DNA of 64,000 nt from Iphione sp. A-MEVVRFRX5. Its lineage: Eukaryota. A model generated the notes under the pieces. That model made no database searches and was not told where the DNA came from. It saw only the letters and a list, made by a program, of their open reading frames with translations. Position numbers and translations under genes: made by a program. Shown here one piece after another: positions 350-38,260 of this stretch. Within the stretch, counting starts at the first letter, position 1, and the number at the start of each line of letters is the position of its first letter. The stretch is taken from contig OZ320318.1 in assembly GCA_976226885.1 (NCBI GenBank), positions 60,884,001 to 60,948,000 of the forward strand, given 5' to 3'.

Positions 350-3300
350 CGTCTAACTAGGCCAGTTGAGATTGAAAATTACACATCTAGGTATTGTGCA
401 TGTTAAAGACAGCTTTTTGTTGTTCCACCATGAAAACGTCTCTCTTTTGGAACTTATGATGACATTGTGGTATATTGGATAGCATGTATTTAGAGTCGTT
501 CCAAAACTTGATGATTCTATTATAGGTAGTTTTACATATGTGTGTTGTGTTGGCGTTAGGTGAGGACTTGAATTTGTCTGCAAAATTGTCTCTTAGAGTG
601 TATGCAAATTGTTCTTTGTCAAAGTATTGTATTTTGGAGGGATGTATTTGTAAGGATGCTTTGTAGCCTTGAATAAGAAGATGTAGTTTTATCCTCCCTT
701 GAACTTGCATCATATTTGCTAATTGATGTATCTACACTGTTGGTGTTCTAATGTCTTGCAGCAGAGCTCTTTTTAGACCTCTGTTTTTAAGTCTCTGTAT
801 CGATTTTATATATTTAGTTGGAAAAGATGACCAGATAAATTCAAGATAGTTGAGATGTGGAGGAACCGGTAACTTGTATGACAACAGTTTTGTTCTATTA
901 TCTAGGTATCTGTTTATTATATTGAGTGCTGTAGGTGTTTTTTATTTTCTTTGTCATGTGTGTAATGTGATCTTTCATGCATAGGTTATTGTCGAATGTA
1001 AGTCTAAGGTACTTGTTTGTTGCAGGTTGCTGTATTCATGTTTTTGCAAGTTGGATAGAGATAGATTATCCGAGTTGGTTCGTGTGCCTGTTGGTGCCAA
1101 ACAGCATGCATTGGTTCTTTCCTACATTGAGTGCAGGCTTATGATATCTTAGCCAGCTATGTACTCTAGTGAGCATGATCTGTGTTATTTTAATAGCTTC
1201 CTGTATTGTATTGTTTACATAGAATAATGGTATCATCAGCGTAGATGGCATATTCATTTGGGATGATTTCTTTTGTTACATGATCAATACATATTGTGAA
1301 CAGAACAGGACCCAGAACTGATCCCTGGGTATTCCAGTTTGTATAAGTCTGTATTTGGAGTTTTCACCGTTAGCGATTGTGCATTGATATCTATTTGATA
1401 GGTAGTCCTTGAAGAGTCTAAGTGCTTTTCTAACTATTCAAATTTGTGATAGTTTGTTTTTTTATCATATTGTGAAAAATTGTATCGCATGCTTTAGATA
1501 TGACAAGGTAGAGGGCTACTGTGAAGAGCTTGTTATTATTGTTTTTCCTTATTGTGTCTACAACATGTTGCACCACAGTTAACGTTGAGAATCCGGCTCT
1601 GTAGCCAACTTGTTCGTTACCCAAGAACAGAGATGGATCTGTAGTTTGTTGGTTCTGACTTATTGCCTCCTTTATGTAGTGGTGTGATTGTAGCAATTTT
1701 CAAACTTGTGGGTATTTTCTCTTCACACAAAATTTTATTAATGATCTGGGAGGGTGGACCAGGCAGTATTGGGATTAACTTCAGAATATGTTTCATGGGT
1801 ATATTCTTGTATCCAGATGATTTTGTGGCCGAAAGGTCCTTTAGGATTGCTGCTACTTCATGTTCATTAGTGGATTCAAAATGTGTTAGCCTACATTTGG
1901 TTAGTTCATATTCATACTTCGTTGTGCTCATGGGTAATTTACTCTAAGTCACATATCCGATATCAGTGAAGTGGTCGTTTGAAATTTGAAATTTGTTTGA
2001 TATCTGCTATGATGGTTGCTTGATAGTGTAATTTGTCTATTGCAAGCTCCTCAATTTTCTTATTGTGTAGTAATGTCTTGAGCTTTCTTCAGTGCTTGGC
2101 TTGATCATGCTTGTACTGGTTGAGCTTTGTCATCGCGCTGGCTTTCTTAGCTTGTCTGATTTTATTGTTCGTTGTTTGTTCTTAATCCTTCTAGCTTGTA
2201 GTAGCAACTCAGATGAGTTTGTCTATCTGTAAAGGTTAAAGAGCTTCTGCTTTAGTCTTCCTAAGGTGGGATATTTTTTTAGTGATCCATCTAGGTATAT
2301 TCATTGGAATACTTTTGTATTTATAAGGTGCCTGTTTATCTAAGATTCAATCTATATCTTGTTCCAGTGTGACACACTGTCTAGATCAGGATTAATCTTG
2401 TGCATTTTACATTCAACTTGAGCTGTGAATTCAGTGTCACTGAAGTAAAAGGAATCTCTAATTCTGATGATTTGGAATTTAGGTTTCATATTTATGACTT
2501 TCCTTTTAACAAACGTCCCAAAATATCGCTTATAGTTGATATAATTGTTTCTGCTGTTTGTTATTTTTTGGGTGTGTTGACAAAAAATCAAGTCATACAT
2601 GTTCTAGTTTGGGGGGTCATTCTGGTGGGTACATTAATTATATTGGTGAGGCCCGTGTTGTTTTCAAATGACATAATCTTCTTATAATGGGAGTTTCTAG
2701 TCTTAAGTTAACCGATATTGAAATTACCAAGAATGACAATTCATCCTTGTTGATATTTAGATTCTGTATTGTCTTCTGTAATTATTGAATGAAGGAGTCA
2801 GCGTTTCCTGATGGAGGTTAACTATTCCTATATAAGTGTGTTTATACTGGTGGAGAGTGAGATCAATATACCCGCTAGAAATATTCATTTGTGCACTCAC
2901 TTCAATCGATGCTTTGTCAGGTAGACTTTTGTAGTAATATGTTGCTAGTCCGCTATGTCTCATGTCTGTATGATGTCTGTCTAGTCTCTGTAATATGTGC
3001 ATGTAGATGTGGATGCGAAATTGGTAATTTTCAATTGTTATTAAGCCATCTTTTTTAAAAACAAAGTATGTCTATATTCCTTTGGGTAAGCTCAGCTTGC
3101 AGTGCATCTACCTTATGTTTCAGACATTCACGTGGACTATTGAGATTCTTGACATAAGTGAGTAAGGGTAAATAGGGTGCCTAAAGGCACAGATAACACG
3201 GGGAAGTTGCGAAAGGGCTAGTGATCGACGTTGGGTCAATGATGGTAAAGACAGAATAAATCTAAATTTGATTTAAACTGGAGTGGCTTAGTGGAGTGGG

Positions 3301-5479: not shown

Positions 5480-5738
5480 TGAACTGCACTTTTTCCAACA
5501 AATTTACTGTTTTTAGTAATTTTCCTATGTAACTTCAGCATTTTTTGCACTTCTCCCATCAATTTAACCATTTTTGGTACTTTTTCCTATCAAATTCACC
5601 ATTTTTTTTGCTCAGTAATAGAGCTCAATAGACAACCTTGTGCAAGAGGCGCCAAGAAAAAATCAACACATTGTGATGCACACGGAGGCCTCACGCAACC
5701 TCACAGACACACACACGCACAGGTAAGAGAACTGGGCC
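5480..5738. mobile_element. Degenerate Harbinger-like MITE fragment
   Basis: Ends gcacaggtaagagaactgggcc|taa and has degenerate aattt/ttttt subrepeats like the MITE at 23229. Confidence 0.4.
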
Positions 5739-6019
5739 TAAATGGCAAATTTGATGCGAAAAGAGCTTCCAATCCTGTGCGTTTGTGCATGAAATTACCA
5801 AGCAGTGTTCGCTAATGAACAATCAAATAGCTGTAGCACACACTGCATGTGGAGGTCACCAAAGTTAAGCAACACTGAGTCCTAGTAGTACTTGGATGGG
5901 TGACTGACTGCCTAGTGGTTGGGGATGAAAATTACTGAATATGAGGCTAGTTTCTAAGTTACCGTCTCAATGCTTCCAGTGAGACCATGTGAGAGGGTCA
6001 GGATGCAAGTGCATTCTCA

Positions 6020-6029
6020 TTCTCTCTCA

Positions 6030-6105
<76 letters not shown>

Positions 6106-6118
6106 ATCTCTCTATCTC
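6020..6118. repeat. (CT)n microsatellite
   Basis: Direct read. Confidence 0.95.
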
Positions 6119-6289
6119 TCAAACCTGTGCAACTATAACGGCTGCACCGACTGAACTTGGAGCCAGAGGCTCCTCCCACCCCAGCTGTCAAATAGTGGCT
6201 GCTGCACTGGTAGGGTGGGCTGGGGGTTCAAATCAACGTCAGTTTTTTCCCCCAACCTTCTCTTAGGCAGAGCTGATGTAACACACTTG

Positions 6290-6440
6290 TAAGGCAGCTT
6301 AGACTTACTCAAACATCAAAGAGTTCACTCCTCCCACTTTCCCTTCTGCATTACTCCTTGCATTCCGTGGAGGTCATCTCACTGCTGTAACTTATCAGCA
6401 CCATAAGCAGACATGGCCTCCACTGACAATGGATACTCAA
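6290..6440. repeat. Dispersed repeat with a gtggaggtca/tgacctccac hairpin (copy 1; others at ~14730-14840, 24058-24115, 38930-39090)
   Basis: Shared gatgtaacacactt...ttgcatt..gtggaggtcat...atgacctc(c/t)actga between the copies. Confidence 0.7.
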
Positions 6441-6879
6441 CACACACACGCACAGAGAAGACACCCTTTAATTTGTTCAACATATTCAATAAAAAAACAC
6501 ATCAACATACCCTAACACACACAGATACCAAACGAAGGTAAGGAGACTGGGCCTTATGGTGTGAGTGGAAATGGTTACTCTTGGAGGTGGCACGAAACAC
6601 TGATTTGCTGTGTGACCTCACAGAGACAACTCGACTGGTGGCATAGCCATGAGTGCAACTGAGACCATATACATGCCCACTACCAAGGTTTCAGCAAGAC
6701 AAAAACTGTTGTAAGCTGCTCTCCTGAGAAATTATCAAAAGTGTATGCACATGTTTGATGACTCTATTATTGTGGAATTAACACGCCACTGTTAGTGGGA
6801 CAAGAGCTTCAAAGCGAACCAAAAGTGAACAATACAGACATACAGATATAACACTTCTGCACTTGAAAGAATGACTCAC

Positions 6880-6938: not shown

Positions 6939-9900
6939 CTGGATAAAAGCAAGACATAATGTACATTTTATCTAACAATCTGAAACAAGTTGTATTGAGA
7001 GTGTCAGACTTCTATACTTTGTACGAGTACGGGTCAAGCAATTTTAAATGATTAATTCACTCAGGCAGAGTAACTGTTAACTTATAACAAACAACACCAA
7101 CATAAATATATGTTGCTGCATAGGGCACGAGACATTACAATGTAAAAATCAATGTGTAACCACATCATCAGAGCTCTTTAAATTTTTTGGGCCCACCTGA
7201 CGCAACATAATTACAAAGTAATGTTTAATGCTTTATGTAAACTTTTTGGTATATAGCAGATTTTGACTGGAGCAAAACCGATTATGATGTCATTTTCAGG
7301 GTCAAAGATTCTGCTGTGGTGGTGTAAATGGTAGTTTGGCAATGGATAAATCCAACATACTTTATCACATGTATTCTAAAAACTTAGTTTTTTGGTCATA
7401 AACATATAAATTGACTCACTCCTGATGAGCCACAGTTTCCTGATGAGGCTGAAGGAGACCATATCAAGTACAGCCATAATAATGACACCGGCTAGTGCTG
7501 CATTTGGGATGAACCTGAACAGCGGTGTCATGACACCCAGAGCAAGCAGGATGAGTGCACCAGTCCACAGTCCTCCAGCAGGTGTCCGCACACCACTTTG
7601 GGAGTTCACGGCTGTCCTATTGACATGTAGTGGAAAAATATGATGGAAATACAACAAAATCAATTTAAATCACTCTCAGAGAGTAAACTTTAAAAAAAGC
7701 CCTATAACAAACATGTTCAAGAAGAGGAACAGTGACACCTGAATCAAACATAAGGACTGTATCTCGGCCTGAGCCCTGAACACAAAACAAAGGCCTGCGT
7801 GACCAGTACCTTTATCTGCAGAGTGCGTATTTGTGAGAGTATGTAGTCATACATTTTAATTGGGAGTTCACAATGCTGCTTATTCTCATAAAGAAAGGTG
7901 AATCTCCAAATAAGCTGCTATACTAGACCCATAGACTAACTAACTGAAATTGCCATGCAATGACAAGAGTAATTTGAACTATGTTGCAATCGATGGCTGA
8001 AACCAGCATTATTGCTGACGCCCTGTTGCTCTTTTTTTAAATGAAAAAGAATCTTTACATGCTCAAAAATTATTGTGTGTTATGACTGCAGCGGCTCTAC
8101 ATATGCTAAACCTTTTTCATTTCGAAACCTACACAACCTCCCAACAAATGGTACCTATACTACTGTTACACATCCAAGCATAAACCTATATACCATCTTC
8201 TATAAAGTTGGTGGAATAGGCATGAAAATATTTAAATTAATAATAAGTTTACATGTCATCCCCTAAGGCTTAATTTATATCAACTCGTATGTCATGTCGT
8301 TGTATCTGTGTTGGCATTAAACATCCTTTTTTTCCTTAATTTGAACATGCCCAAATCAAAGAAACATATACTCCATGTTTTGAGAGTGAAACACGGATGG
8401 GAAACAGGGTCACATGAAAAGGGGGCAACGCTTGTAAAACGCCTCTGCAAGCATACATCTAGCAAAGGACACAACACGGCAAAATCCTCATGTCTTCAGA
8501 GCAGGTTTAATCTAGCCCCTCCATGTACACGGGCAGCAACACCTGACAACTGAAACAGACTTTCTTCTATGAAGTCATGATTTATATGCGGGCTTCTGAA
8601 AAGTAATACTTTTTTAGTCATGTTTAGTTTGTTATAAATGGCTTCCAACAACTTTTCAAACTTTCTGAAACACACTTCCTCTGTTCCTAGTGAGTTGTGT
8701 ACAGCCAATGTGAAAAGTAGTAATGCAGTTCAACAGAACTTCAGTTTTAAACGCAAAGTATTTACCTATATTATATTGACTATATTACTAATTATCGAAC
8801 CTTGGTAATCTCAGTAATAAAATCGTGCAACGATTTTTCAAAAGGAAGTTGTGAACTAATTTCACGTTTATCTTTCCATTTTTTTTATCTTCTGGCCTGA
8901 CTTTTGAAAAAAAATCATTACCGTGAAAAACTTCCTGTCACAGGGTATGAGGCAGCAAAAGATCCGACTAGATTCGATGCACCTGTAAAGCACAAAATAG
9001 GAAACTGTCTAACAATTCATAATACAGAGACAAGTAAATCACATGCGTGTACACAATAATTGCGAAAACTAGATGGATCTAGTCCAAATAATGAGAATAA
9101 CTGTTTGTCATGCACTTACAAGAAAGGAAGCTATCCTTCCTGAGGCACCTTTGTCACAGCACATAACAATTATATCCACAGTAAGACAGACAAAAGCACA
9201 CTCACCGATAGCAATCAGTTCTTGATTAGCATCTATTCTGTATTTATTTCTTCTTGCTGAAATACGAGATTGTTGTTGGGTGATTAGAAATACCGACAGA
9301 TCAATGAACAAAACTAGAGCAAATGCAAAGTCTTCTATAGTTTCCTACTAAAAAGTACACACCAACAATAGGCTACTGAGTAAGTAAATTGAATACGACA
9401 GAAATTTAAGCAAAACAATTCAGTTAATAACATGTACGTTCTTACCAAAGGCGTTTCCTATTGCAATTGATTCAACTACTCCCATTAGCGGGACAACTGC
9501 AAGCCCTCCGCCAATTTTCTGAAACCAGAAAAAAAACAATATCTGTGAATACATTTCCCCAAAATCCTCTCTGCTTCAACACGCATTATTTAATACATGT
9601 CCAGTCAGACCCTGTTATCTAGGTTCTAATCCAGAAAACTGATTCCAAAGTCACAGAAAGATTGAATTTAATGTAATGAGGTCTCTGCTTATATTAGATA
9701 TAATGCTATGTTTTGCTGAAAATGGGACGTCATAGTAAAGTTTCCACCGATCAAAGTGTTGTTTCCCGACGTCGGCAGCTGCTTCAGTTATTCAGATGCT
9801 TTTGCTGATGCTTTAAAACAGTACTGAGTTGTTTGTAAGGCCAGGCAAGAGACTAAGACTTGTGCCTAGTTTGACCGCCAGCTCTTGCCACATTTGATGC

Positions 9901-14212: not shown

Positions 14213-14296
<84 letters not shown>

Positions 14297-17200: not shown

Positions 17201-20200
17201 GCCAAGCAGGCAGTATACGAAGCAACCCATAAAGGCCGAATAAAGGCCGTACTGAAAGACATGAAGGGTCCAACAATCTAAGTCTTTTCTGTGTCACGAG
17301 GAGGAGGAAGGAGATAACTGGGTACGTAACATGTACAGTATAAGGAAGAACAACAGAAGTGTACGAACATGTTGTCAATGGAATAATTTATCCAAGAGGC
17401 AGTAACAGAAGGGTAAATTTGTCTTTGTCTCTGATTCTGGCTGTCTGTCTGTCTGTCTGTCTCTCTCTCTGTATCTGTATCTGTCCCTTACTTTGTCTGT
17501 CTGTCTCTCTCTCTTTCTGTCTCTCCCTCTTTCTGTCGGTCTGTCTNNNNNNNNNNNNNNNNNNNNNNNNNNNNNNNNNNNNNNNNNNNNNNNNNNNNNN
17601 NNNNNNNNNNNNNNNNNNNNNNNNNNNNNNNNNNNNNNNNNNNNNNNNNNNNNNNNNNNNNNNNNNNNNNNNNNNNNNNNNNNNNNNNNNNNNNNNNNNN
17701 NNNNNNNNNNNNNNNNNNNNNNNNNNNNNNNNATGATTAGGAAAGGAACCAACCTGGGGTGGTAATTCAGCGACCTGTGCATAAGCCAGACCTTGTGGAA
17801 TGACGGTGAGACCGACGGTGAGACCAGCAATAAGATCCCCTTGAAACTCAGGGCACCTGAAATAAAGTAAACCATCATGACCACCAGCACGAGCATTATC
17901 CACAGACGCTGTCCAGTACTAGACACAAATTTACTTAACTATCCGGTAATATGGTGTGAATAGAGTCCCTAAAAATAAGTTAAATTTAAACACGAATAAA
18001 AAAGGTCGATAGCCTTAAATGCCATAGATAGTCTCTGATGCTTGCCGGGCGTTGGAAGGTATTGCATCGCGCACTGCTCAGGAGTTACCTAAAGGGTCCT
18101 CATTATATTTACGGGCTCATGTGGGACTAGCACGCAGAGTGGGACAAGCCATATCTACTATGAAAGTATCGTTCTTCACTTCATGCTTCTTTTGTTTTGA
18201 AGCGAACACAGTGCCCACCTTTACAATTTGTCTGGGCAGCAAAGGCCGTTACGAATTCCTCATTATACCCAGCATCTGCCGATTTGGAAACCTGTTCCAG
18301 TGTATATTCAATAGACTCCCTCTGGGGCGACCACCAAGGGGACTGGATAAATATTGTCTAACTCGCGATCTTATCGCCCCCACTGACATATGACAATTTC
18401 ATATGAACGTCACCAGGAATGGTGATCTCACTTTTAACATTAACAAGTGCCTTTGTCACTTACCCCCTCTGACACCACAGGGGCGCAGACCTGTTTGTAA
18501 GCTACTCTTCCACAGACCAATGAGACTTGATGTAGTGACTGTACCTTCACCAATAATGGTTTGATTTTGATGAAACAAAATTAATTAGAAAGCGTACATA
18601 TATGCAACCATATGTATTGATATAGGGAAGAACGTGTGAAATTAATCAAAATATATTGTATCGTAATGTATAAGCAATTTGCTATAAAAAAGAAGGAAAT
18701 ATCAGATGATTAAAAACGTATTGCATCGTGTCGTACAACAACCATGTACTATGATAAATCGAAGTAGGTGAATATTAGAAGGATTGGAACGTGTGTAAAG
18801 ATACTGTCGCATCCCATCCCATCTCATCAAATGTAAATACAGTTAGACCCTGGTCATATATACAACTGCTGTATATTTTAAATCCCAGGTTAAATTAAAG
18901 TTTATAAAAAAAAAAGTGACTCAGGAGTATGCCGGTGTAGGTTTTATATGAGTTTATCTGAACAAAAATTAAAAAGATTACATGTAATCAAGAATAGGAA
19001 GCAATTTCTCTACACCAAACTGAAAGAGTGTCAGAGTTTTGTTCTGCTTTCTTTTATTCTGTTAACTACCTTAAAACATATGGTAGTATGAATTATTTCA
19101 AGAAAAGATTTAAATAACCTATGAAGAACAATGAATCGTGACGTTTAGAAAGAGTTTATACTAGTGAGTTCTTCACCCATGGCCTGATCTACTTTCAGGC
19201 AATGCTTTATTTATGTTGTGTAAACAGTACATTTACAATTGACTCATTGATTAAATCAGTTTCACCTTCTCAGCTAGACTGACTTCTTATTCCTTTGTAG
19301 TGGTGGCTGCCATCGTGTCTTGTGGAGTCTTTTTGTATAGAAACGTGGTCAGCAGCTCAGCAAGTAAATGAAGAAACTGCTCCCAATTCCTGTTTTTATC
19401 CCCTCCTGACGGGCAAGCATATAAGATCAAGCCAATGAGAGCACTCCTTCAGTGACATCTCATCCATGCTTTGAAGACAGTCCCAGCATGGAGAGGTGCG
19501 ACCTGATAACTTTGGGCTTCCCTCTTTCTTCACCTGTCTGAAGAGAGCCCCAGCCCCAGGTGGCGTGACCTGATGACTTTGGCCCTTCTCCTTTCTTCAC
19601 CATTTGAAGGGAGCCCCAGTCCTAGGAGGCATGACCTGATGACTTTGTGCCTCCCCTTTTGTTATTTATGTTAACCTGTTTGAAGAGTGTCCAGATCCAG
19701 GTGGTGTGAGCTGATGACTTTGGGTCTCCCCCTTTCTACCACTTGTTTGTAGAGAACCCAGCACTATGAGGCATGACCTAATGACTTTGGGCCTTCACCT
19801 TATTCACCTGTTTGAAGGGAACCCCAGCTCTAGGAGCCATGACCTGATGACTTTGAGCCTCCCCCTTTGTTCATCTATTTGAAGAGAGCCCCAGATCCAG
19901 GTGGTGTGACCTGATGACTTTTGGTTCCCCCCCCCTTCTTCACCTGTTTGATGAGAACCCAGCACTAGGAGGCATGACATGATGACTTTGGGCCTCCCCC
20001 TTTGTTCACCTGTTTGAAGGGACCCCCCACCCTAGGGGACATGACCTGATGACTGAGCCTCATCTGTTTGAGGAGAGCCCCATCCCTAGGAAGCCTGACC
20101 TGATGACTTCACAGCTGCCTTAGCACCTGCTGCTCCAGCCCCAGTATGGAGAGATGCAACCTCACAACTTCGCACCATCTTATGACTTGCTGCTCTAGCC

Positions 20201-23200
20201 CTATGCCTAGAGAGGCTATTCGGTTTTTGCTGCACTTTACTAAATGGTCTCAGGGTGTCCTGTTGGCTGTTTCTAGATCTGCCCCCCGATCTGGTCTCCC
20301 CCAGTCTGTTCTTATACAGGGAAATGTACAGGAGGCCATTCCATTCTAGGAGAATCTGGTCTCTGCCCCAGTCCTGTTTCCCCCGAGGTTTGGTCTTTAA
20401 CCTGAAGACTGCTGTATGTCCCATTGGTAGGGCAGATTCCACTTAGACGATGGTGGATAAGCATCTTGGATTTGCAGAGCTATAATTCACGTTAGTTAAG
20501 TCATCAGTCAGTTTCTGATATAAGTATGTACTGAGATATTCCATTTATTTAGTCCATGTTGTAGTATAGGAGATTCTGCTGAGAGCCCCCCCTTGAATGT
20601 TATGTTGAGTGTGAGATAATGCATCGATGCACAGACATAAAAATGATGGCAGGATAAATCATCTCAATAGCAGGACAAATCCACTAATAGGTTCTCTCCA
20701 AGGTTAAATCGGCTGCATGCAAGCGCTGAAGGCATTTGCTTTGGTGTTAAAAATGCATGCAGTCCTTCCCCATTTCCAGGCAAGAAAGACATAACCCTTG
20801 ATGTGTGCCCTTCATTCAGATTACAGTGTATACCTGTATCTTCTTTTTCTTGCAGGTCTGCCATGAACAGATTGAACAAATCTATCTGGCCGCAGCCTCT
20901 CCAGACATTTGCAGGTATTACTTGTATGTGCAAACCAAAAGTTGTCTATGGCTAGTGCCTTTCTTAGTAGATAGCAGAAACCACTGTCAGTTGGACTGTT
21001 TGTTTGACTTTATGACTATGCTGGCTGTTGCCTATAGTTTACCCATCGATTGGATAAAGTGATGAACATTCCATATTTATTTAGCTTTTCCTTTATTATT
21101 TTAAGTGATTCTCAATGCATTTAAGAAATTTCTCATACAATGCTTCTGGACGAAGTCAAATAAATTATAGGAATTACAGGACCACCACTCAACCTACTCA
21201 CAAACTATCTGATGAACAGAACACAAACCACCACAGTCAATGGTAAGACATTACAAATCATACATCATATCTGGAGTACCCCCAAGGCTCTGTTCTGGAG
21301 CCAATAATGTTTACACTGTACATAGGTCACCTTTGAACAGAAAGTAAATTTATGGTGAACATCATTACAGTATGTGTGCACATGATGCAGTCGTACTCTT
21401 TACCCTCAAAGACTTAAGTAAACGTATGTATAGACAATGCACAATCCACTCTCACTAAAATCTATAACTGGTTAACATTTGATTAATTGGCACTGAATAT
21501 TAGTAAAATCAAATATGTGGTCTTTAGGTCTTCAAGAAAGAACATACACTGCGCTAATCAAGACAGTTAATCATCAACTCTCATCACTGGATTTGATCAT
21601 TATATACCTAGACACCAGAACAAATCAAGGTCATACCAAGCCAACCCATAGGGTGCCAACGCGCATCTGAGTTGTACTTCCTGTTGTTGAGGGCCTGGGC
21701 ACAGGCAGTAAGTAAAAAACAAAAATATTGTTTTATAAACAGAAAATGACTTGAGTATCAGCTTTTCCCATAGTACTGACGGGAGACATGTATCCAGCTC
21801 TTTGAACTTCCCACTTCTCATACCAGAAACATGACTTACATGTAGTGGATGATGAAGCTGTGAGCTGCAATTTAGAGATCAGGCACCCTCAACCCCTATA
21901 CAATTGAGACGCATTAACCCAAGTACCTCCTTTACTTGAATTTTTGTATGGATTCAAGATATTCCGGTTACTGAAATTGCCACCTATGCGTCTCCTGGCA
22001 GGGAAAACTTGCATAATCCTTAATGTCTATAGAAAAGAAAGTATGTTGCTTCAACCTATGGCTTGTGCTGTTTCTCCCTTTAGGAGGTCATAGCCCCCAT
22101 CTCGTACGTGTATATGTTAGTTTTACCCATGATAAACATTCTAGCTTGTGTTTGTTCTACATTTACAAGGTCGCCGTCCATTTTTCACTTTTATGTAACA
22201 GTTGCTTTGTGTTGACTATAGACATCCTAATGCCAGGCATTTCCTTTGTTCTCCCTTGGCCAGTTAACTGCAATTATTTTCTATATAAACAAGAGTGTGG
22301 ACCTGTGAGGTCTATTGTCCCCCGCCATCAACTGCCTTGAGAGAGAGGGAGAGAGAAGGAGGGAGAGGGAGGGAGAGAGAGGGAGAGAGAGAGAGACAAT
22401 GTGTGTGTGTGTCTGTGTGTGTGTGTGGTGTCTCTCTCTCTTTACAACCACCTTGATTTGCAACTTGTTTTGGGGTTGGTTGGCTAGACTTGTCTAAATC
22501 CTTCAGGTTTACAACTCTCGGTTCTGCATGACTGAGCACAACACCCTTGGTTCTGCCTCACTGAGCACCAGACCTTTACAAACCTTTGGTTCTGCATGAG
22601 TGAGCACAGCACTCCTGGTTCTGCCTCACTGAGCACCAGACTGCTACATGCTGATAGTGGTAGAGGGGAGATATTGGTGAGTGTGTATGTGTATGGTCAG
22701 ACCTAGGAACCCCTGAACCAGGTATGTATGTTTGTAGGTGTGTTAGCACAAGAGTAAAATTGGTATAATTTCACCTTCAAAATACTTGGATTACTACCAG
22801 AATTACCCAGTGCCATGGTGCCATATATACCACTATCATATATTAAAATCAGTTCGTTTGATTGAAGGGTTTGAGACTTATAAGACCCACAAGAGTGTGA
22901 TGGATGGTCAGGACACCAGCCCATAGCATTCCTAATGTCCCCCCCCCCCCTCTATGAGGCGGGGGACAATTAAGTAAAAAATGGCTTGAAATGTACTCCA
23001 GTTGCAGATGATGAAATCCAGATACACAGTATAATTTATAGTGAAAATTGTTTCATCACTGACATTGAGTCTGGTTGATGTGATTCTCTGGTTGCGGGGT
23101 CTCCAGATGCCGAGGTCTGATTGTACATACATGCACACAGGCACACACACATTCACAGGCGTCCTCTGCTCACCCAGCTCATCCTGACCAAATTTCACAT

Positions 23201-26200
23201 AACAGCAATGGCACCACTTCTTGAATGAGCCCCGGTTTCCTTACGTGCGTGGCCATGCGTGCGTTGGAGTGCGGGAAATGCACCAATTTTACTGTCATGG
23301 TTATTTTAATGAGAGGTGTTCCTTACGTGCGTTGCTGTGCGTGTGCGTTGCTGTGCGTCGCCATGCGTGGCTGGTTTTCGGACCGTTCCCGTAAATTTCA
23401 CGCACACGCACAGCAATGCACTGGTATTTCCATCATTTTGACTGACTTTGACTGAATTTGACTGTCTTTTGACTGATGATACCGCACATTTCCACACAAT
23501 GACGTTTTTTTCCCGAATTTTTCCGCACATTTTTGCCGTTTTTTGGCCGAATTTGCATGAAATATGCGTTTTTCGGGACAATTTTCATGAAATTTGCCGT
23601 TCTTTGGACAAATTTGCATGAAATATGCGTTTTTCGGGACAATTTGCATGGAATTTGCCGTTTTTCGGCAGTTTTTTGCTGTTTTTTCATATTCTCTAGT
23701 CATATACGCACACAAACGCACGCATCAGTTGAGGACACCCCTGTGCGTTGCCGTACGGAAACCGGCCTAGACACCCCGTCCATGCGTTTTCCGCACTGAC
23801 ACGCACACGCATACCAACGGACGGCACCGCAGGTAAGGAAACCGGGCCTGAGGCAGTATCTGTGCGTGTGTGTGTGCGCGTGTGCATGCATGTGTGTGTG
23901 ATGAGAGTTTGTGTCAGAGGGAGGGTAGTAATCAAGGCCACCAACTAAAACAGGTGGCCAGCACAAAAACAACATTCCTCCCTTAGTCACGAACCTGCCC
24001 AAATTCACGACTGGCTTAGACTTCAAACAGCTTGGCACGTGAGCGGCACACGTTTTACATAGTGGAGGTCTCCCACCACCAACTGAAACATTATGAGTTG
24101 ATCTGACCTCCAGTGATTAATAGGTGGGATAAGCCGCATTACTTTTCCACTAAACTAGTCCTGTAAAATACATGTATATTGGACCTTTTCCTACTGGAAT
24201 CTGGAAGCAAATCAAGTGAAAAATGTTCAGCCTTCCTGCTAATCTAGCGGCTGGGGTACTCCTCAGGTAATCAAGGTATGTCTGATATCGGTCCTTTTTC
24301 ATAGGCCATTATCCGCGCATTTCCCTTAGTATAAGGAAATGAGCATCGAGGTTAGTGTCCACTTTGGAAACTACTACATTTGCTTTGATTCAAGATCATG
24401 ATATGGTCCGATACCTTCAAGGAGTCGCCTAAGGTCAGTTTATTGACGATTTCCCTCCCATTTACCCATATCGCTTTGGGCTGCTTGTTTTTACCTGCTG
24501 GAACAATGATTTCAAGCTCTTAGCAAAGTAATGATTATGAAGCTTTATTTTTTTTATACATCGCCTTCTAACAGGTCTAAAAGCTGGGCAAAGGTGGTGG
24601 AGAGGTCTCTGGATATGCTGCCCCCACTGCTACCAGCCACATCTCAAGCATCGACAGCTTCTTCGGTCTGCATACCCTACCTGGGATAGGGTAAACCCTC
24701 TCAAGCTGTTTTCCTGTCGCAAATGAGTAAAAGGCTGAGCAAGAATGATGCCAGGGTGTCAACAGTGACAATTTAGTGTGTCAGACTAATCTCCGCAAAC
24801 CACACCAAGAGAGTCAACCCTCGAAAGGTTGTTATTATCTTAGCCTTACTCGGCATGTAACTTTTCTAAAACTACCACATAGATTAGTCAGAAAGGAAAG
24901 TCCATAAAATTCATACCTCACCTGAAATATTAATATCAGATCCTCCAAACATAGGTAATGTTAAATATCAGTAAAAACTGTCATGACATTGTTTTGGATC
25001 TCACAAGGTGGAGATACCTTGGGTAATGGGAAAACATAATAAAATGTTACTTTTAAGAGTCCGTAAATTGAGGACGAAGGGTTTAGGCCTAGGCTCTAAC
25101 TTTTTGTGCGATAATCCAAGCCCGGCACCCGAGGCCGCAGGCCGAGGGTGCAAGGGCTTGGATTATCGCACAAAAAGTATAGAGCCTAGGCTTAAACACT
25201 GTTCTGACTACGACAATTTTATAAAAGAGGGTGAAATATTACCAAATTACTGCTTATCTTGGTAGAATTTTGTTGAGATGATGAGGCTTGTACGCCATTT
25301 TGGATTTGGATGTTTACTTTTGCATCGTGACTTTCTATTGGTCGTTTACCTTTTTATGGAAATATATTAAAATAAATGTGAAATTTGACAAATACAAGTC
25401 AAGAAACATTTAATAATTCAATTATTCAACAATTTATTCACATAAGGTGTACATTTATTAAGAATTTTCCAAAACGAGTATGTGCGAGCTGCATCTAATG
25501 CGCGTTTCCGGTTTACATGTTCATTTGCGCGCGAATTGAATATTAAAGACGCAGTTAGCGAAATTTGCTCCTGAGAACATACCAGCAACATCTTGTTCGA
25601 TATTTTTGTCAACTGTTGTGGAAGATGCTGTAGTTACTGATACAATGGACTTTGATGACGGAATTGTGGCTTTCTGCTCATCCGCATTGACAATTGCGGG
25701 CACAACACTTTCGGGATTGACTAAACATGAATCTGCCTTGCTTGCTTTATCTGCAACAACGGTTGCAGTCTTTCCGAAACTAGACAGGGTTTTGGACATA
25801 GATGCCTTCACATCTGAGGAACAACTTCCCAAATATGGAGCAAGTGAGTTAACATTTTTATGACCCGTTACTTCTTGTATTTTGGTCGGGGCAAAGCCAG
25901 CTCGGTCAAGGTTGGTTACTACCGTTGAGCGAATACAATGATTTGTGTATTTTTGTGAGAGACCACCATCTATACTCATATCCGACATCATACTGTATAA
26001 CTTGTTGCGACCCACAACCATATTGTCATACCAGCATGTCTGCTCATAACGATAAGGCCGTTTTGGCCGCTGAAAAAAATATGGATTCATTTCATTCAAT
26101 TTAGCCATGTATTTTTTGAAGCAAACCAAAGGGCACCTCCTAGGGTTCTCAGGTGTTGCATACATTCGTGTACTAACATCTTTCTCGTCTCGATTTAAAC

Positions 26201-29200
26201 CTTGACGGGTCTTTTCTTTCTCATTGAATGTCATATGAACATATTCCCTGTCCCTTCCATCAGTTGCTATGTTGAAGCTGTCCTTCCTTAATTCCCTCAA
26301 CCCTTCCCTTCCCCGTCTCCCAAAGTGAACCATTACATTATAAAACACCTGTCTCTGCAGCCCTACTGGATCATCCTTGAACACCTTGGAATAGAGCTTG
26401 TCAATGTCCTCATCTTCTATCACAGACTTATGCTGAGTGTGATCATTGCCCGTTTTGCGAATTTTGGCTACATACCCTTTAAAGGCTAAATTGGCATTCT
26501 TGAAAATGGGGTCGCTCGTAATATTAAATGGTTTGGAAAATGGTGGGTCATTTAGATACCGCTGTAGACCAAAACGCAAATTTTTCACAGCACTCTTTGA
26601 ATACATTTCACCTTTCTTATTATTAACCACTGTATAATATTGTTCGAGGGTATCCGCCAACTGCTGCTGGGAGTAATCTTCAAATGCCGGGTCTTTGCCT
26701 ACTCCAATGAGCCACTCTGAAAAATCATGAAAGTGCTACTAAATAATTGTTTTACAGTGATTTAATTTCATTTCATCCCATCTCCCCCATGTCAGCTTTA
26801 TAATTTACTATGCGTTTCATACCTTTGAACTGCTTGACCGCCCAACGTGTCTGTTGTTTTGTTGCTTCTGCTGTCCTGTGTTCCTTCAATTCGTCCATTT
26901 CCTCCTTGCTTGGCACATGGAAGCGAACGTTTGGATGATTCAAGGGAGACTTCTGCTGCTCATCTATCAATGTTTCTTGAACTGCAATGAAATAATCCAC
27001 ACATACCTACACTATTTGCATTAATGTTCTATGCGCCTCCCCCACCCTACGGAAACTTACATGAAAATCATAGGTAATATGATTGAAATTAATTGGAAAC
27101 TGCATAGACATATACTCACTTTCTCCTTCTGAGAGGGAATCTTGGAATTCTGCTGCATCGAGATCCATTTCGAAGGCCTCCAAGAATTTCGATATTTGGT
27201 ATATTCCTGCGATGTACTCTTCTTTGGTTGCGGTGTTTTCGAGACGATATGCATCTAGTTCCACGTTGGGGTAACGGAATATTTCCTTAACTTTGCATAG
27301 TTTCTCTTGGAAAATCACAAAATCTCCCTCTTTAATCTTAGTTTCAGCCATTTCAGCCGTTTCATTCATTCGACGTTCTCTTGTCAAAAAGATCGTCTGC
27401 TCGACCTGTGTTTATAAAACGTAGGGTTCATTTCCGCTGTTTCGACCAATGAAATCAACTTCCCTTATAGTATTTCCTGTCACATGACTTTTCTTCTATT
27501 TGTTGACAAGAAGGCATTCTTCGACGGTGTTTGTTACATTTCTTAGGAAAATAACCACAATGTCCATTAATTATTTCAGTATAACGCTGTCAAATTTCCT
27601 AACAATAATTCAGGGTCACAAAACTTGTGAGATACATACAAAAGGCGTCAGATTTTCATGAAGCGAGTCGTCAAGGGTCCGCCATTTTATTTTACTTGAA
27701 ACCAATGGTATTGCTGCTTACAAATCGCTTCCCGGGAATGGTCCAGAATTCAAATCCAGCTGAGAACAATCGTTTCTAGGGGACAATGTACCGATTATCA
27801 CAACAGGAGTGTTAGAACGGAGGACAACTCGACACCATCAATACAATTTCGCCATGGACACACACAAACATTAATTAATCATTCCATCAAGCACCACCAC
27901 AATATCACCACATCTGCAATAACCCAGCACTCAGTAAGGAAGTTAACAGTTTCACCACTGATGCGACAGTAGATGTTTCTGCTCTTGCTTTTTGCCAGTT
28001 CGTTTCAAAGCAGGTCCCTGCTGATAAAAATAAATGGAACTGACCTGTACTTTGGAAGCCATTGTAGTATTGGTAGCTTCTTTTTAACATTAGCTAACGT
28101 ACATGTGTTGCGCATGCAGGCACGGCAGTTGAAACTCATGATGCGTTCTTTGACGTCATGGCATGCAGAGGTAACGTCTTTACAGCCCTGTTGTAAGCCT
28201 GGAGTGAAAAAAGAAATAATTAATTGTCTTCACATAAAAAAGAGATCAAAATACATTTAATCGGGGTGTCTAATGGGACTACTTCATTCCCTGGTGGAAC
28301 ATTATCCTCATACTAATGCTAAACTTCAACTTTCTTGTAAATTAAAAACGAATACTTAAAAACAATTTGTGCAGCAGCAAGCAATTTCTGACACTGGAAA
28401 AGTATAACAGTCGACACCCGCGTCGGCGACCACTTCGGGACTGTGTGAAAGCGGTCGCCCCAACAAGTGGTTGCCCCAGTTGTTCACCTCTCTTCTCCCT
28501 CTCACCAAAGTAACTTAGACAATCGTCATATGTGTTAAGAGTCCTAAAAATGCTGAATTTGACGGGTAAGAGTCAAAAGGTGCTGAATTCGACACGTTAA
28601 AGTCCCAAATGTGCTGAATTTGACAAGTAAGACTCCTTCTTACCCTTCTTACTGACAGATTACATGATACATCAAACGGTCAACATGGAAGTAAAATTTA
28701 TAGCTACATTTTTAGAAGCCCTCTTCTACTGCTTTAAAATATAACACGTGCAACATTTATAGCTACATATACATTAAGCCTTCTCATGTGCTACTATCCT
28801 TTGCAATTTACGAACGTGGACAAGCTTAAAACAATTCCTATGAAATTGAAAAGACTTTTATATTCTAGTATGAACAGTTGGTGAACAGTTTGTAAACCGT
28901 TCCTTAATGTACCAACATGCTCCTAAACGTGCAAATACATCTGTATGCGCTATGTACCGTGGCATGAACTCGTAAGTTCATTGTTGATATAAAGTTAATC
29001 AGTCATAATTCGCCTGGGTCATAAAACAACAAATGTTGTAAACATATAATGTCACTGTGTGTGATAATAATTCAGATGAATATTGACAAGAAGCAAACAA
29101 CTCCAACGAGACAAAAACGTCATTCATGGCTAGTTACATAAATACGATGTACACGTTTTTGGGGTGTGTTTACCCACCCTCAGCAGTTGAGCATGTCACG

Positions 29201-29647
29201 TGATAAAGCAACAAAGTTCGAGACAATGCGCGTTTTCTATTAAGAAGTTCGTAGAGAAATAATTTGTACATGACCTTTGCGCTCAAATAAAGTATTAAGT
29301 TCGTCTTTGCATTCGTGTTGTTAAAGCGAAGGACTCAGACACGACTGTACTTAAAACGTCAGAACGTTCACATTTATCTAGTTTCCCTGTTATCGGAGAC
29401 CCTTAGACGTTGCCAAGTATATGTGAACTATAGACAATTGAACGCTACAACTGGAGCAGACCAAGAACAGGGACAGATTTGGACAGATCAAACTGGGTTT
29501 TCTCGTATCCAAGGGCTCAGAGATGGGGACAGACATGAAATAGGGCCAGAAACGACCTTTTAAGCAGACTTGAATTTCACAGCTACCCAGAATTGAAATG
29601 GTGAATTCTTATTTTATTCAGCTACCTTGTACGCACGATTTCGCCAT
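6880..29647 (-). CDS. SLC26A11: Sodium-independent sulfate anion transporter (SLC26/SulP family), spliced and 3'-partial: join of 29647-29626, 28198-28045, 17856-17754, 17251-17059, 16877-16792, 15083-15004, 13486-13432, 13222-13135, 12211-12027, 9518-9446, 9256-9206, 8982-8922, 7616-7420, 6938-6880
   Basis: All 14 exons have AG/GT boundaries with matching phases and total 1407 nt (469 codons). The translation contains KKKLPILQWLPKY, GDLIAGLTVGLTVIPQGLAYA, YGLYSAFMGCFVYCLLGTSKDITLGPTAIMSL, YRIDANQELIAIG and YPVTGSFSRTAVNSQSGVRTPAGG, closely matching SLC26A11. The last TM segment and STAS exons were not found and presumably lie left of position 1. Confidence 0.95.
7420..7616 (-). CDS. SLC26A11: SLC26A11 coding exon 13 (TAVNSQSGVRTPAGGLWTG...KLWLIR-K)
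   Basis: Acceptor gtcaatag, donor gtgagt, 197 nt. Confidence 0.95.
8922..8982 (-). CDS. SLC26A11: SLC26A11 coding exon 12 (ASNLVGSFAASYPVTGSFS-R)
   Basis: Acceptor gctttacag, donor gtaatg, 61 nt. Confidence 0.95.
9206..9256 (-). CDS. SLC26A11: SLC26A11 coding exon 11 (RRNKYRIDANQELIAI-G)
   Basis: Acceptor atttcag, donor gtgagt, 51 nt; NQEL motif. Confidence 0.95.
9446..9518 (-). CDS. SLC26A11: SLC26A11 coding exon 10 (KIGGGLAVVPLMGVVESIAIGNAF-A)
   Basis: Acceptor ggtttcag, donor gtaaga, 73 nt. Confidence 0.95.
10450..11370 (-). mobile_element. 5'-truncated LINE RT remnant
   Basis: Minus-strand translation KNGVPQDFVLGPVLFTLYINN...EYAIYADDTII. A 23-bp tandem duplication (11372-11417) sits at the truncation junction. 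Confidence 0.8.
11789..11927. other. Assembly gap (others at ~13918-14047, 17547-17732, 57007-57151, 57240-57403)
   Basis: Runs of N; ends approximate. Confidence 0.95.
12027..12211 (-). CDS. SLC26A11: SLC26A11 coding exon 9 (RNAVVVLVASSLAG...GLPPFNLPPF...ALDMLA)
   Basis: Acceptor ctcttctag, donor gtgagt, 185 nt. Confidence 0.95.
13135..13222 (-). CDS. SLC26A11: SLC26A11 coding exon 8 (KIKNMKWRNDSEMTRCLRCCKKFIWIFTT-A)
   Basis: Acceptor atatttctag, donor gtaagg, 88 nt. Confidence 0.88.
13432..13486 (-). CDS. SLC26A11: SLC26A11 coding exon 7 (LWDFLLGLICMIVLFTMK)
   Basis: Acceptor ttttttccag, donor gtagga, 55 nt. Confidence 0.9.
14213..14295. repeat. (CT)n microsatellite
   Basis: Direct read. 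Confidence 0.95.
15004..15083 (-). CDS. SLC26A11: SLC26A11 coding exon 6 (KWLGLTVKSRAFIPQLYWTFANIEHT-N)
   Basis: Acceptor ctttgttcag, donor gtaagt, 80 nt, phase 0 to 2. Confidence 0.9.
16792..16877 (-). CDS. SLC26A11: SLC26A11 coding exon 5 (FIIDFIPYPVINSFTVAAAITIACGQIK)
   Basis: Acceptor catttttcag, donor gtgcgt, 86 nt. Confidence 0.95.
17059..17251 (-). CDS. SLC26A11: SLC26A11 coding exon 4 (YGLYSAFMG...MGIFSL-G)
   Basis: Acceptor gtctttcag, donor gtgaga, 193 nt; SLC26 signature region. Confidence 0.96.
17754..17856 (-). CDS. SLC26A11: SLC26A11 coding exon 3 (CPEFQGDLIAGLTVGLTVIPQGLAYAQVAELPPQ)
   Basis: Acceptor tttatttcag, donor gttggt, 103 nt, phase 2 to 0. Confidence 0.95.
19490..20110. 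repeat. ~67-bp minisatellite, 10 copies, with three-unit higher-order structure
   Basis: The gacctgatgactttg anchor recurs at 19500, 19567, 19633, 19708, 19775, 19841, 19908, 19976, 20043 and 20097. Confidence 0.92.
21100..21900 (+). mobile_element. Highly decayed LINE RT fragment
   Basis: GVPQGSVLEPIMFTLYI at about 21273-21325, preceded by a frameshifted RT domain 3-4-like sequence. Confidence 0.65.
22518..22645. repeat. Short tandem repeat (ggttctgc..tgagcac x4)
   Basis: Two ~70-bp units, each made of two subunits. Confidence 0.75.
23229..23848. mobile_element. PIF/Harbinger-like MITE
   Basis: TIR gccccggtttccttac / gtaaggaaaccgggcc (15/16), TGA 3-bp duplication, internal ~30-bp tandem repeats. 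Confidence 0.82.
25081..25197. repeat. 117-bp near-perfect palindrome (cruciform-capable) with a GGCC-GCA-GGCC core
   Basis: Left arm gtttaggcctaggctcta-actttttgtgcgataatccaagccc against the reverse complement of the right arm, gtttaagcctaggctctatactttttgtgcgataatccaagccc: 1 mismatch and 1 indel. Inner stem gcaccc/gggtgc surrounds gaggccgcaggccga. Confidence 0.95.
25433..25459 (-). terminator. Two AATAAA polyadenylation signals of the recombinase gene
   Basis: Plus-strand tttatt at 25454-25459 and 25433-25438, 60-90 nt after the stop codon. Confidence 0.55.
25521..27369 (-). CDS. Crypton-type (DUF3504/KCTD1-ZMYM-like) tyrosine recombinase, three exons, 534 aa: join of 27369-27120, 26981-26823, 26716-25521
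   Basis: Exon 1 (250 nt) ends A|gtgagt. Exon 2 runs tttcattgcag|...AAA G|gtatga (159 nt). Exon 3 starts ttttcag|AG TGG (1196 nt to the stop). The junction restores TRWAVKQFK-E-WL. Catalytic motifs are intact: HFGRRGREGLREL (R), EKEKT (K), YTNHCIRST (HxxR), VTGHKN (H), SLAPY (Y). There are no internal stops or frameshifts. Confidence 0.92.
27411..27450 (-). promoter_or_regulatory. Candidate core promoter of the recombinase gene
   Basis: TATAAA on the minus strand at 27416-27411, about 42 nt upstream of ATG 27369; CCAAT/ATTGG box at 27446-27450. Confidence 0.55.
28045..28198 (-). CDS. SLC26A11: SLC26A11 coding exon 2 (..LQQGCKDVTSACHDVKERIMSFNCRACMRNTCTLANVKKKLPILQWLPKYR)
   Basis: Acceptor ttttttcactccag, donor gtcagt, 154 nt, phase 1 to 2; carries the family motif LPILxWLPxY. 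Confidence 0.92.
28535..28640. repeat. Three ~32-bp tandem units next to a pogo-like TIR fragment
   Basis: tgctgaatt(t/c)gac x3; cagtcgacacccgcgtcggcgaccac near 28408. Confidence 0.55.
29195..29204. promoter_or_regulatory. CLEAR-like E-box (GTCACGTGAT) in SLC26A11 intron 1
   Basis: Matches 9/10 of GTCACGTGAC; related CACGTGAC at 31299-31306 and CACGTGAT at 31943-31950. Confidence 0.4.
29626..29647 (-). CDS. SLC26A11: SLC26A11 coding exon 1 (MAKSCVQ-G)
   Basis: Kozak accATGG; 22 nt ending in G|gtagct (phase 1), in frame with the open phase-1 exon at 28198. Confidence 0.7.
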
Positions 29648-37109: not shown

Positions 37110-38070
37110 GACAGAGACCTGTCTGTTACCTGTTGTGTGTCCCCTCTAATCTTCTGTAGCGGTGTCTGTTGGATGTTGTGTGTCCCCTGTAATGCTCTGT
37201 AGAGGTGTCTGTTACCTATTGTGTGTCCCCTGTAATGCTCTGTAGAGGTGTCTGTTACCTATTGTGTGTCCCCTGTAATGCTCTGTAGAGGTGTCTGTGA
37301 CCTGTTTTGTGGCCCCTGTAATGCTCTGTAGAGGTGTCTGTTGAATGTTTTGTGTCCCCTCTAATCTTCTGTAGTGGTGTCTGTTGGATGTTGTTTGTCC
37401 CCTGTAATGCTCTGTAGAGTTGTCTGTGACCTGTTGTGTGTTTCCTGTAATGCTCTGTAGAGGTGTCTGTTGGATGTTGTTTGTCCCCTGTAATGCTCTG
37501 TAGAGTTGTCTGTGACCTGTTGTGTGTTTCCTGTAATGCTCTGTAGAGGTGTCTGTTGGATGTTGTGCATCCCCTGTAATGCTCTGTAGAGGTGTCTGTT
37601 GGCTGTTGTGTGTTCTCTGTAATGCTTTGTAGAGGTGTCTGTGACCTGTTATGTGTCTCCTGTAATGCTCTGGAGAGATGTCTGGTACCGGTTGTGTGTC
37701 CCCTGTAATGCTCTGTAGAGGTGTCTGTTGAATGTTTTGTGTCCCCTGTAACATTCTGTAGTGGTGTCTGTTGGATGTTGTGTGTCCCCTGTAATGCTCT
37801 GTAGAGCTGTTTGTGACTTGTTGTGTGTTTCCTGTAATGCTCTGTAGTGGTGTCTGTTGGATGTTGTGTATCCCCTGTAATGCTCTGTAGAGGCATCTGT
37901 TGGATGTTGTATGTCCCCTGTAACTCTCTAAAGAGGCACATGTTACCTGCTGTGTGTCCCCTGTAATGCTCTGTAGAGGTGTCTGTTACCTGTTGTGAGT
38001 CCCCTGCAATGCTCTGTAGAGGTGTCTGTGACCTGTTGTGTGTTTCCTGTAATGCTCTGTATAGGTGTCT
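37110..38070. repeat. 43-bp minisatellite, about 22 copies
   Basis: Unit cccctgtaatgctctgtagaggtgtctgttggatgttgtgtgt (starts at 37141, 37184...). It produces the repetitive minus-strand ORFs with a 43-aa period. Confidence 0.95.
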
Positions 38071-38116
38071 GGGCATCAAGGGAAGGGGGCTTGGCGTCAG
38101 GGGAGGGGGCCTTGCT

Positions 38117-38260
38117 TTAAGTGAGATACATAAGCTCGTGTGTGGCTGTTTGCGAAATAAACCCATGGGTCATTCGCCCACTCGGCTGCGCCTCGTGGGC
38201 TACTGACCCGTGGGTTTATTTCGCATACAGCCACACACTCGTTATGTATCTATCACTTAA
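38117..38260. mobile_element. 144-bp TTAA-bounded palindromic (foldback) element
   Basis: Arms ttaagtga..gatacataa..gtgtgtggctgt.tgcgaaataaaccca.gggtca and their reverse complement. The core on the minus strand reads gcccac-gaggcgcagccga-gtgggc. Confidence 0.8.

Follow-up and report, generated by a model that had tools for sequence, protein, structure and literature searches.

Cryptons and their CryptonA group (Goodwin et al., 2003; Kojima and Jurka, 2011, PMC3212892) are separated from DIRS and Ngaro recombinases by a DUF3504-related recombinase, and a circular intermediate has been proposed for them; those of animals have been reported without terminal repeats, either direct or inverted (PMC3212892). 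DIRS1-like elements possess internal complementary regions (ICRs) and a circular junction (Piednoel et al., 2011, PMC3266345). Guidance for curators names a direct repeat of several base pairs as the sole distinguishing feature of Crypton ends. We have analyzed a 64,000-nucleotide stretch of DNA from Iphione sp. A-MEVVRFRX5 (GenBank assembly GCA_976226885.1, contig OZ320318.1, positions 60,884,001 to 60,948,000 of the forward strand; hereafter the window, numbered from its first letter), in which a long imperfect palindrome lies behind a tyrosine recombinase gene. On the basis of sequence comparison, we propose that this palindrome is probably the 3'-terminal cis-acting attachment module of a CryptonA-type DNA transposon.

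Folded DNA serves as a recombination substrate in bacteria. The integron attC site, 60-140 bp long and marked by single extrahelical bases, is a folded bottom-strand substrate of the integrase IntI. In the phage CTX-phi, two inverted site copies in attP(+) fold in single-stranded DNA into a duplex target of XerCD. To our knowledge, no single-stranded stage is known for Cryptons. Two structural motifs are also relevant here: tandem G.A mismatches in a 5'-YGAR-3' context form stable sheared pairs, and GC-GNA-GC is a stable type of mini-hairpin, examples of which occur in the origins of phages G4 and phiX174.

The palindrome, read in the sequence and recovered by a repeat finder, is near-perfect and occupies 25078..25200, assigned to the minus strand like the gene. 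On the plus strand, its arms cover 25081-25123 and 25154-25197 and flank a core at 25124-25153. The repeat finder returned perfect arms of 25 nt (25099-25123 and 25154-25178), and the outward extension of the arms over 28 nt (25078-25105 and 25173-25200) shows 82% complementarity. Alignment of the left arm with the reverse-complemented right arm reproduced the count given in an earlier note on this DNA: arms of about 43 bp that differ by one mismatch (TTAG versus TTAA) and one 1-nt indel, together with an inner stem and a GCA center. The core mini-hairpin (25125..25151), on the plus strand and complementary to the gene, reads gcaccc-GA-GGCC-GCA-GGCC-GA-gggtgc, with gcaccc/gggtgc and GGCC/GGCC as stems and GCA (25137-25139) as the loop. 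It contains two CGAG tetranucleotides, whose opposing GA dinucleotides (25131-25132 and 25144-25145) make up a tandem G.A mismatch. Folded as DNA, positions 25075-25205 reach -61.2 kcal/mol, against -17.8 +/- 2.9 kcal/mol for 200 shuffles (z = -15.2). The earlier note had placed TTAG and TTAA at the outer edges of the palindrome. In the arm alignment, weak dyad symmetry runs past them, to about 25058 and 25218, so these tetranucleotides fall within the arms and do not represent target duplications at the flanks. The degenerate continuation on the distal side, together with a 10-mer, GGACTCTTAA, at 25053-25062, takes up 25053..25077 (minus strand). A search with one arm 18-mer found no other occurrence in the 64-kb window. 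Rfam, searched with the palindrome, gave microRNA matches of hairpin shape and nothing else, below threshold (34.9 bits, where the gathering score is 76).

The gene in front of the palindrome lies on the minus strand. Its open reading frame (ORF) at 25521-26660 matches DUF3504 (PF12012, E = 2.6e-14, 54 bits against a cut-off of 29.7) and Phage_integrase; it falls within exon 3 (25521..26716), which encodes the catalytic R..HxxR..H..Y residues and ends in a stop codon at 25521-25523. From splice signals and reading frame, rather than from homology, we predict two upstream exons on the same strand: exon 2 at 26823..26981 (159 nt, bounded by AG and GT) and exon 1 at 27120..27369, with its ATG at 27369-27367. 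The predicted exons add up to 250 + 159 + 1196 = 1605 nt, or 535 codons, with a closed frame and GT-AG introns; this exon model suggests an intact three-exon recombinase gene of the DUF3504 (CryptonA) type. When the protein was aligned with 11 relatives, the RRGREG, HxxR, H and Y catalytic positions were invariant. By the definition of Kojima and Jurka (PMC3212892), the predicted product is a CryptonA-type tyrosine recombinase. The palindrome follows the stop codon at a distance of about 320 bp and lies about 235-255 bp past the gene's two AATAAA signals (25438-25433 and 25459-25454, minus strand, read from the sequence), in agreement with the roughly 240 bp noted previously. Its position past these signals implies that it is probably outside the mRNA. 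The introns in the gene, moreover, call for a role at the level of DNA rather than of cDNA.

Is the palindrome the end of a mobile element? Among 5.8 billion proteins, the closest are at most 44-47% identical to the window recombinase; because this set holds no second copy of the window's own family, we compared the loci of its relatives instead. Eighty-nine loci encoding such relatives were retrieved. They are metagenome or assembly contigs that do not come from this genome, most of them short metagenome contigs; 86 (L001-L086) were scanned for hairpin-type inverted repeats, and L087-L089 were compared solely by alignment with their sister copies. Mobility is apparent in three families of relatives, which have several copies at unrelated places: Fam1 (L001, L087 and L088), Fam2 (L006 and L089) and Fam3 (L030 and L031), all independent insertions with unrelated flanks. 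In Fam1, whose copies are 95-98% identical, homology stops at L001:5987 in all comparisons, 3 bp beyond a palindrome at 5820-5984. In Fam2 (97%) it stops at 5825, 5 bp beyond a palindrome at 5656-5820, and in Fam3 (97%) about 10 bp past the palindrome. Homology between independent copies thus ends 3-10 bp past the palindrome, implying that the palindrome is the 3' terminus of the mobile unit. With both ends proven in this way, the units measure 3.2, 3.8 and 1.7 kb in the three families. No target-site duplication was seen in any of the three. Fam2 has a 7-bp terminal direct repeat, TATAGCA, which overlaps the distal arm; the 3' copy in L089 reads TATAACA, as expected if part of the repeat derives from the target. 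Fam1 and Fam3 have no clear terminal direct repeat. The direct repeat of Fam2 speaks against the contrast that the earlier note had drawn between action on the palindrome and simple direct-repeat excision. Compensatory changes could not be followed inside these young families, whose copies differ too little to be informative.

The loci of the relatives showed several other features. One Fam1 copy is 5'-truncated (at L088:3366, equivalent to L001:3363) and has kept its 3' palindrome and terminus in full. Compared with its sisters L082 and L040, L083 has 1.6 kb inserted within the element (1466-3049). A small palindrome with the signature described below lies at L031:3188-3254, in the opposite orientation and about 120 bp past the point where the L031 element ends on its 3' side; possibly, a further element has inserted alongside and ends here. 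A foldback repeat, AT-rich and about 230 bp in length, occurs near all three Fam1 copies, in both orientations and with 74-84% identity among its own copies (L001:130-245, 6279-6519 and 7546-7776; L087:1060-1305; L088:7213-7399). It is without the TC/GA signature of the palindromes and is probably an unrelated miniature inverted-repeat transposable element (MITE) that is abundant in the genome concerned.

The window copy is tied to its own clade by a short motif. Its recombinase groups with those of L002, L003, L025 and others (support 100/98), and the clade motif GTCAGAAC (gene strand) lies at 25201..25208 on the minus strand, directly gene-proximal to the palindrome. The motif takes the same place in L002 and L025, and in L003 10 bp separate it from the end of the contig, at which point the palindrome would be expected to start. 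Across all loci and the window (724 kb), GTCAGAAC was found 12 times against 11 expected; its overall frequency is that of chance, yet four occurrences fall at that exact place, and their placement is therefore not due to chance. Judged by this motif, elements with about 47% protein identity have kept a conserved 3' non-coding end. Together with the ends of the three multi-copy families, it bears out the earlier proposal that the palindrome is the terminus of the recombinase's element, and we regard it as very likely that the palindrome is the Crypton's own 3' end signal.

This linkage extends well beyond one clade. Strong palindromes, defined by a score of at least 25, were found in 12 of the 86 scanned loci, in every case downstream of the recombinase gene and 244-1743 bp from the end of the match. 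None lay upstream, where 101.5 kb had been scanned as compared with 88.6 kb downstream (p = 1e-4); the only upstream hairpins in the 86 loci were four weak, AT-rich ones. A maximum-likelihood tree built from 74 recombinases has families with palindromes dispersed over all its major branches, implying that the feature is old or widespread in the group and not the peculiarity of one lineage. When the loci scored as palindrome-free were rescanned by signature, no further weak palindromes appeared. No recombinase relative was found in viral contigs, and hence no captured circles. L074 was considered as a head-to-tail pair that might expose a junction, and was rejected: its two genes are divergent paralogs with no palindrome between them. 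The contigs of L002, L003, L013, L033, L066 and L079 break off exactly where the palindrome starts or at its outer edge. Such breaks (in L002, L013, L033, L066 and L003) were considered as a hint of element ends and given no weight, because de Bruijn assemblers stop at long palindromes and the breaks are an expected artifact of assembly.

Although their arms are unrelated in sequence from family to family, the palindromes, 120-180 bp long, share one build. Read in the orientation of the gene, the core has the form stem - TC - (N)GGC - T(N)1-2C - GCC(N) - TC - stem, and each arm has one or two more C-TC-G positions; because TC stands on the same strand in both arms, it breaks the dyad. In the 12 gene-linked families, 23 TC/GA double mismatches have this orientation and two are reversed (p = 2e-5), both of the latter in L025. 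The mismatched columns taken together comprise 65 with a left-arm pyrimidine facing a purine, 8 with the converse and 10 of some other type. The complementary strand consequently reads CGAG opposite CGAG, which is a tandem G.A mismatch in the 5'-YGAR-3' context, and its loops, closed by GC...GC, are GCA, GCA, GTAA, GAA, GTA, GGA, GAA, GTTA, GAA, GGA, GCA and GAA. The GNA triloop to which the earlier note had drawn attention is thus a conserved feature: 12 of 13 palindromes have a GNA or GNNA loop, always on the strand complementary to the gene. In 11 of 13, that strand is also the more stable of the two when folded, the gain over the gene strand being 1-7 kcal/mol under generic DNA parameters. 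In a consensus fold of the 55-nt cores, compensatory double changes are seen at 15 of 16 stem pairs, and the architecture is kept across recombinase lineages that are only 30-47% identical in protein, while the arms co-vary freely. In several families, dyad symmetry extends 8-13 bp outside the TTAA. L025 (2497-2638) departs from this pattern: its inner two mismatch positions and its loop have a polarity opposite to that of its own outer position and of every other family, the picture that would result if an exchange between the arms had turned the central segment around, a flip-flop-like state.

A scan of the 64-kb window with this signature found exactly two sites, 25081-25197 (minus strand) and 38124-38251 (plus strand), and none in 362 kb of shuffled sequence. 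The second site belongs to a palindrome without a gene (38117..38260, plus strand), which has TC/GA mismatches, a TGC loop and TTAA-like outer arms; its arm sequence is unrelated to that of the first. It directly follows a 43-bp satellite repeated 22 times (37120-38071) and a 21-bp repeat in two copies (38072-38114), and tblastn detected no recombinase remnant nearby. Possibly, this palindrome marks a Crypton end that is solo or non-autonomous, satellite having taken the place of the internal part. A 12-nt match between it and 27627-27638 was dismissed as being at chance level (E = 0.5).

The 5' ends of the relatives provide a further link to the palindrome. The Fam2 element opens with 13 nt (ATTATAGCACTTT) whose exact inverse complement directly adjoins the palindrome on its gene-proximal side, with a score that none of 300 shuffles reached, and L001 and L087 of Fam1 have an equivalent 12-nt inverse complement (2 of 300 shuffles). 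Between the two families, the 5' termini show a single base difference. Comparing 5' with 3' ends by k-mers returned only this proximal-flank match and one arm motif, with no inverted terminal repeats between the ends. In these two families, circularization that brings the 3' end up against the 5' end would, given the proximal-flank match, complete the distal arm, with the crossover inside it (TATAGCA, in one family). Two families also have subterminal arrays 30-50 bp inside their proven 5' ends, 22 bp x 3 at L087:2747-2812 and 26 bp x 2.2 at L006:2073-2129. A 9-mer is common to these arrays and the palindrome arms, and they are possibly repeated protein-binding sites. The window has a candidate array of this kind at 28536..28637 (minus strand, 31 bp x 3.3), the last unit of which carries GGACTCTTAA (28535-28544). 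The same 10-mer lies 16-25 bp beyond the palindrome, at 25053-25062, a coincidence with a chance probability of about 0.14; array and match together suggest that the window element spans about 3.6 kb. As a candidate for its 5' end, a lone GTTCTGAC at 29365 was set aside as probably due to chance, having no supporting context.

How might the palindrome work? We infer that the recombinase binds or cleaves it, and we lean toward its being the actual recombination site. In the mechanism we propose, the recombinase would bind the palindrome module. The distal outer arm would hold the crossover site, and the proximal arm would be an inverted copy able to pair with it; as an internal inverted copy of the circle junction, the proximal arm could either align both ends of the element or offer the crossover site in the form of a stem. 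From the fixed polarity of mismatches and loop, the recombinase would recognize the strand or side it is on, and integration would be a conservative exchange between the crossover site and a short similar target, leaving no target duplication. Whether the module acts in a folded form, as a cruciform or a single strand, is a question on which we can be only tentative, and we consider such action possible rather than probable. What favors it is that a duplex site would hardly account for pairing conserved independently of sequence, together with breaks that, on one strand, are exactly the most stable non-Watson-Crick motifs. If the module does fold, the complementary strand would be favored, because on that strand the breaks become sheared G.A pairs and a GC-GNA-GC mini-hairpin. 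The strand-specific G.A and GNA signature, as read in these sequences, thus favors action as a hairpin without proving it.

Several observations weigh against this interpretation. The terminus of the window copy is deduced from relatives, the best of which is 47% identical in protein. A strong palindrome is present in only 8 of the 23 loci that have at least 1 kb of downstream sequence. The DIRS1-type complementarity between 5' terminus and palindrome flank that is present in Fam1 and Fam2 was not found in Fam3, nor was the inverse complement of the proximal flank found within 4 kb upstream in the window, where the 5' end was not located. Finally, the folding advantage of the complementary strand, at 1-7 kcal/mol with generic parameters, is small.

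The main rival explanation is that the palindrome functions purely as duplex DNA, a symmetric platform for recombinase binding that takes its polarity from the TC dinucleotides and an odd-numbered center. Classical tyrosine recombinase sites such as loxP and FRT do consist of inverted binding elements around an asymmetric spacer (PMC3212892), the terminal direct repeat of Fam2 fits such a site, and the recurrence of arm motifs in the 5' subterminal tandem repeats suggests plain protein-binding sites. However, a dyad of 120-180 bp in which arm sequence is free and complementarity is kept is unlike a sequence-specific duplex site, and a duplex platform gives no reason for selection of breaks that produce exactly YGAR tandem G.A mismatches and GC-GNA-GC on one strand. 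We therefore consider this explanation a serious possibility but, on balance, a doubtful one. An RNA-level role, in which a long transcribed hairpin would serve 3'-end formation or be the precursor of small RNAs that regulate the element, would suit the location 3' of the gene; the sub-threshold microRNA-model matches merely reflect hairpin shape. Yet two AATAAA signals precede the palindrome by about 235 bp, the DNA boundary of the element falls at the palindrome in relatives, and RNA from the gene strand would carry U.C and C.U mismatches, the less stable version of the fold. Such a role is unlikely.

The conserved GC-GNA-GC loops recall the GC-GAA-GC mini-hairpins of phage origins and raise the idea of a priming or replication hairpin in a single-stranded circular intermediate. 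Elements of 1.7-3.8 kb that encode no Rep or polymerase make this decidedly unlikely, and the terminal position and ICR-like complementarity point instead to end recognition. The earlier note had also invoked telomere resolvases, relatives of tyrosine recombinases that act on palindromes; by analogy, a cut around the center would generate covalently closed hairpin ends of a linear element. But integrated copies retain the whole palindrome, with their boundaries at its outer edge rather than its center, and the center is an asymmetric 3-4-nt loop of fixed polarity without dyad symmetry, so the analogy is not supported and a resolvase-type site is extremely improbable. Equally remote is the alternative that the earlier note had named against its own proposal, namely that the palindrome is an independent MITE or foldback element, for example one with TTAA targets, that landed behind the gene by chance. 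The TTAG and TTAA near its edges, the gene-free palindrome at 38117-38260 and the AT-rich foldback repeats near related Cryptons might speak for this. It is largely refuted, though, by 12 families in which palindromes with unrelated arms occupy the same place and orientation downstream of recombinase genes; by copy boundaries that take in both gene and palindrome, with which the element copies co-terminate; by symmetry that runs 8-13 bp past the TTAA in several families, one edge in the window being TTAG; and by the clade-specific motif that ties flank to palindrome.

We return, then, to the palindrome as the end module of a Crypton, and to how it compares with the systems described at the outset. 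The window element and its relatives resemble CryptonA in having a single DUF3504-like recombinase gene with intact catalytic residues, small size, no target-site duplication (in three related families) and, in one family, a 7-bp terminal direct repeat; the related elements of 1.7, 3.2 and 3.8 kb also have no reverse transcriptase. They differ from the animal Cryptons described so far in that a structured palindrome of 120-180 bp forms the 3' end in many lineages. The resemblance to DIRS1 (PMC3266345) lies in integration by a tyrosine recombinase without target duplication and in an internal sequence near the 3' end that is the inverse complement of the terminus at the circle junction, as seen in Fam1 and Fam2 for the 5' terminus and the 3' arm. 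Unlike DIRS1, however, these small, one-gene elements have no reverse transcriptase, RNase H or methyltransferase; they lack inverted terminal repeats between left and right ends; and they keep introns, hence passing through no cDNA step. In addition, the ICR equivalent and the right terminus are here contiguous, forming one hairpin with a conserved G.A and GNA core.

The likeness to integron attC sites, as these are generally known, is that of an imperfect palindrome 3' of a gene, free in sequence and kept in structure, in which unpaired positions mark one strand and the crossover lies in the outer box, so that the integrated unit starts with the remainder of the site. Strand marking is represented here by the 23-to-2 polarity of the TC/GA mismatches and by loop polarity, and is a resemblance only. 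The differences are the tandem G.A pairs, the eukaryotic, intron-bearing recombinase of the DUF3504 type and the absence of an IntI platform (attI, Pc); single-strand use is hypothesized here. With CTX-phi attP(+), the palindrome has in common inverted site copies that would fold into a tyrosine recombinase target, whereas CTX-phi is a bacterial filamentous phage with a single-stranded genome and recombinases encoded by the host. The complementary-strand cores, GC-GNA-GC (or GNNA) flanked by CGAG opposite CGAG, match d(GCGAAGC)-type mini-hairpins and sheared G.A pairs; these are structural motifs and not a genetic system, and their stability here is assumed, being only roughly reflected in a generic energy model. 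A telomere-resolvase site would differ in having a perfect central dyad in place of an asymmetric 3-4-nt loop. The differences from a TTAA-target (piggyBac-like) MITE are the TTAG at one edge, the symmetry past TTAA and co-termination with recombinase genes.

The rest of the window contains few features of note. Around the recombinase gene there are only short and apparently unrelated ORFs. About nine copies of a 67-bp tandem repeat occupy 19463-20109, and long (TC)n / (GA)n microsatellites lie at 6028-6122, 14216-14294 and 22337-22411.

In the literature covered, to which Repbase reports and subscription journals did not belong, we found no description of a Crypton hairpin, palindrome or cruciform, suggesting that a structured palindromic end signal has not been described before for animal Cryptons. 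The marking of animal Crypton ends has so far been an open point, and the palindrome offers a concrete, testable cis element. Its signature is a practical aid for annotating Crypton ends and their gene-free derivatives, the more so as assembly breaks at palindromes will hide these ends in metagenome surveys. Recombinase and site also form a compact pair and a possible candidate for a tool. More broadly, the palindrome may connect Cryptons in mechanism with DIRS1-type retroelements and with those bacterial recombinases whose substrate is folded DNA. We put forward, as a speculative proposal, that animal Cryptons recombine via folded DNA, with the 3' palindrome, taken as an internal inverted copy of the circle junction joined to the right end, adopting a hairpin or cruciform on the complementary strand that is recognized through its sheared G.A pairs and GNA loop. 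The recombinase would act on this structure in the manner of IntI on attC or of XerCD on CTX-phi attP. If true, this would be the first eukaryotic tyrosine recombination site of a structure-specific, single-strand type, and it would provide a mechanistic link between Cryptons and the ICR of DIRS1.

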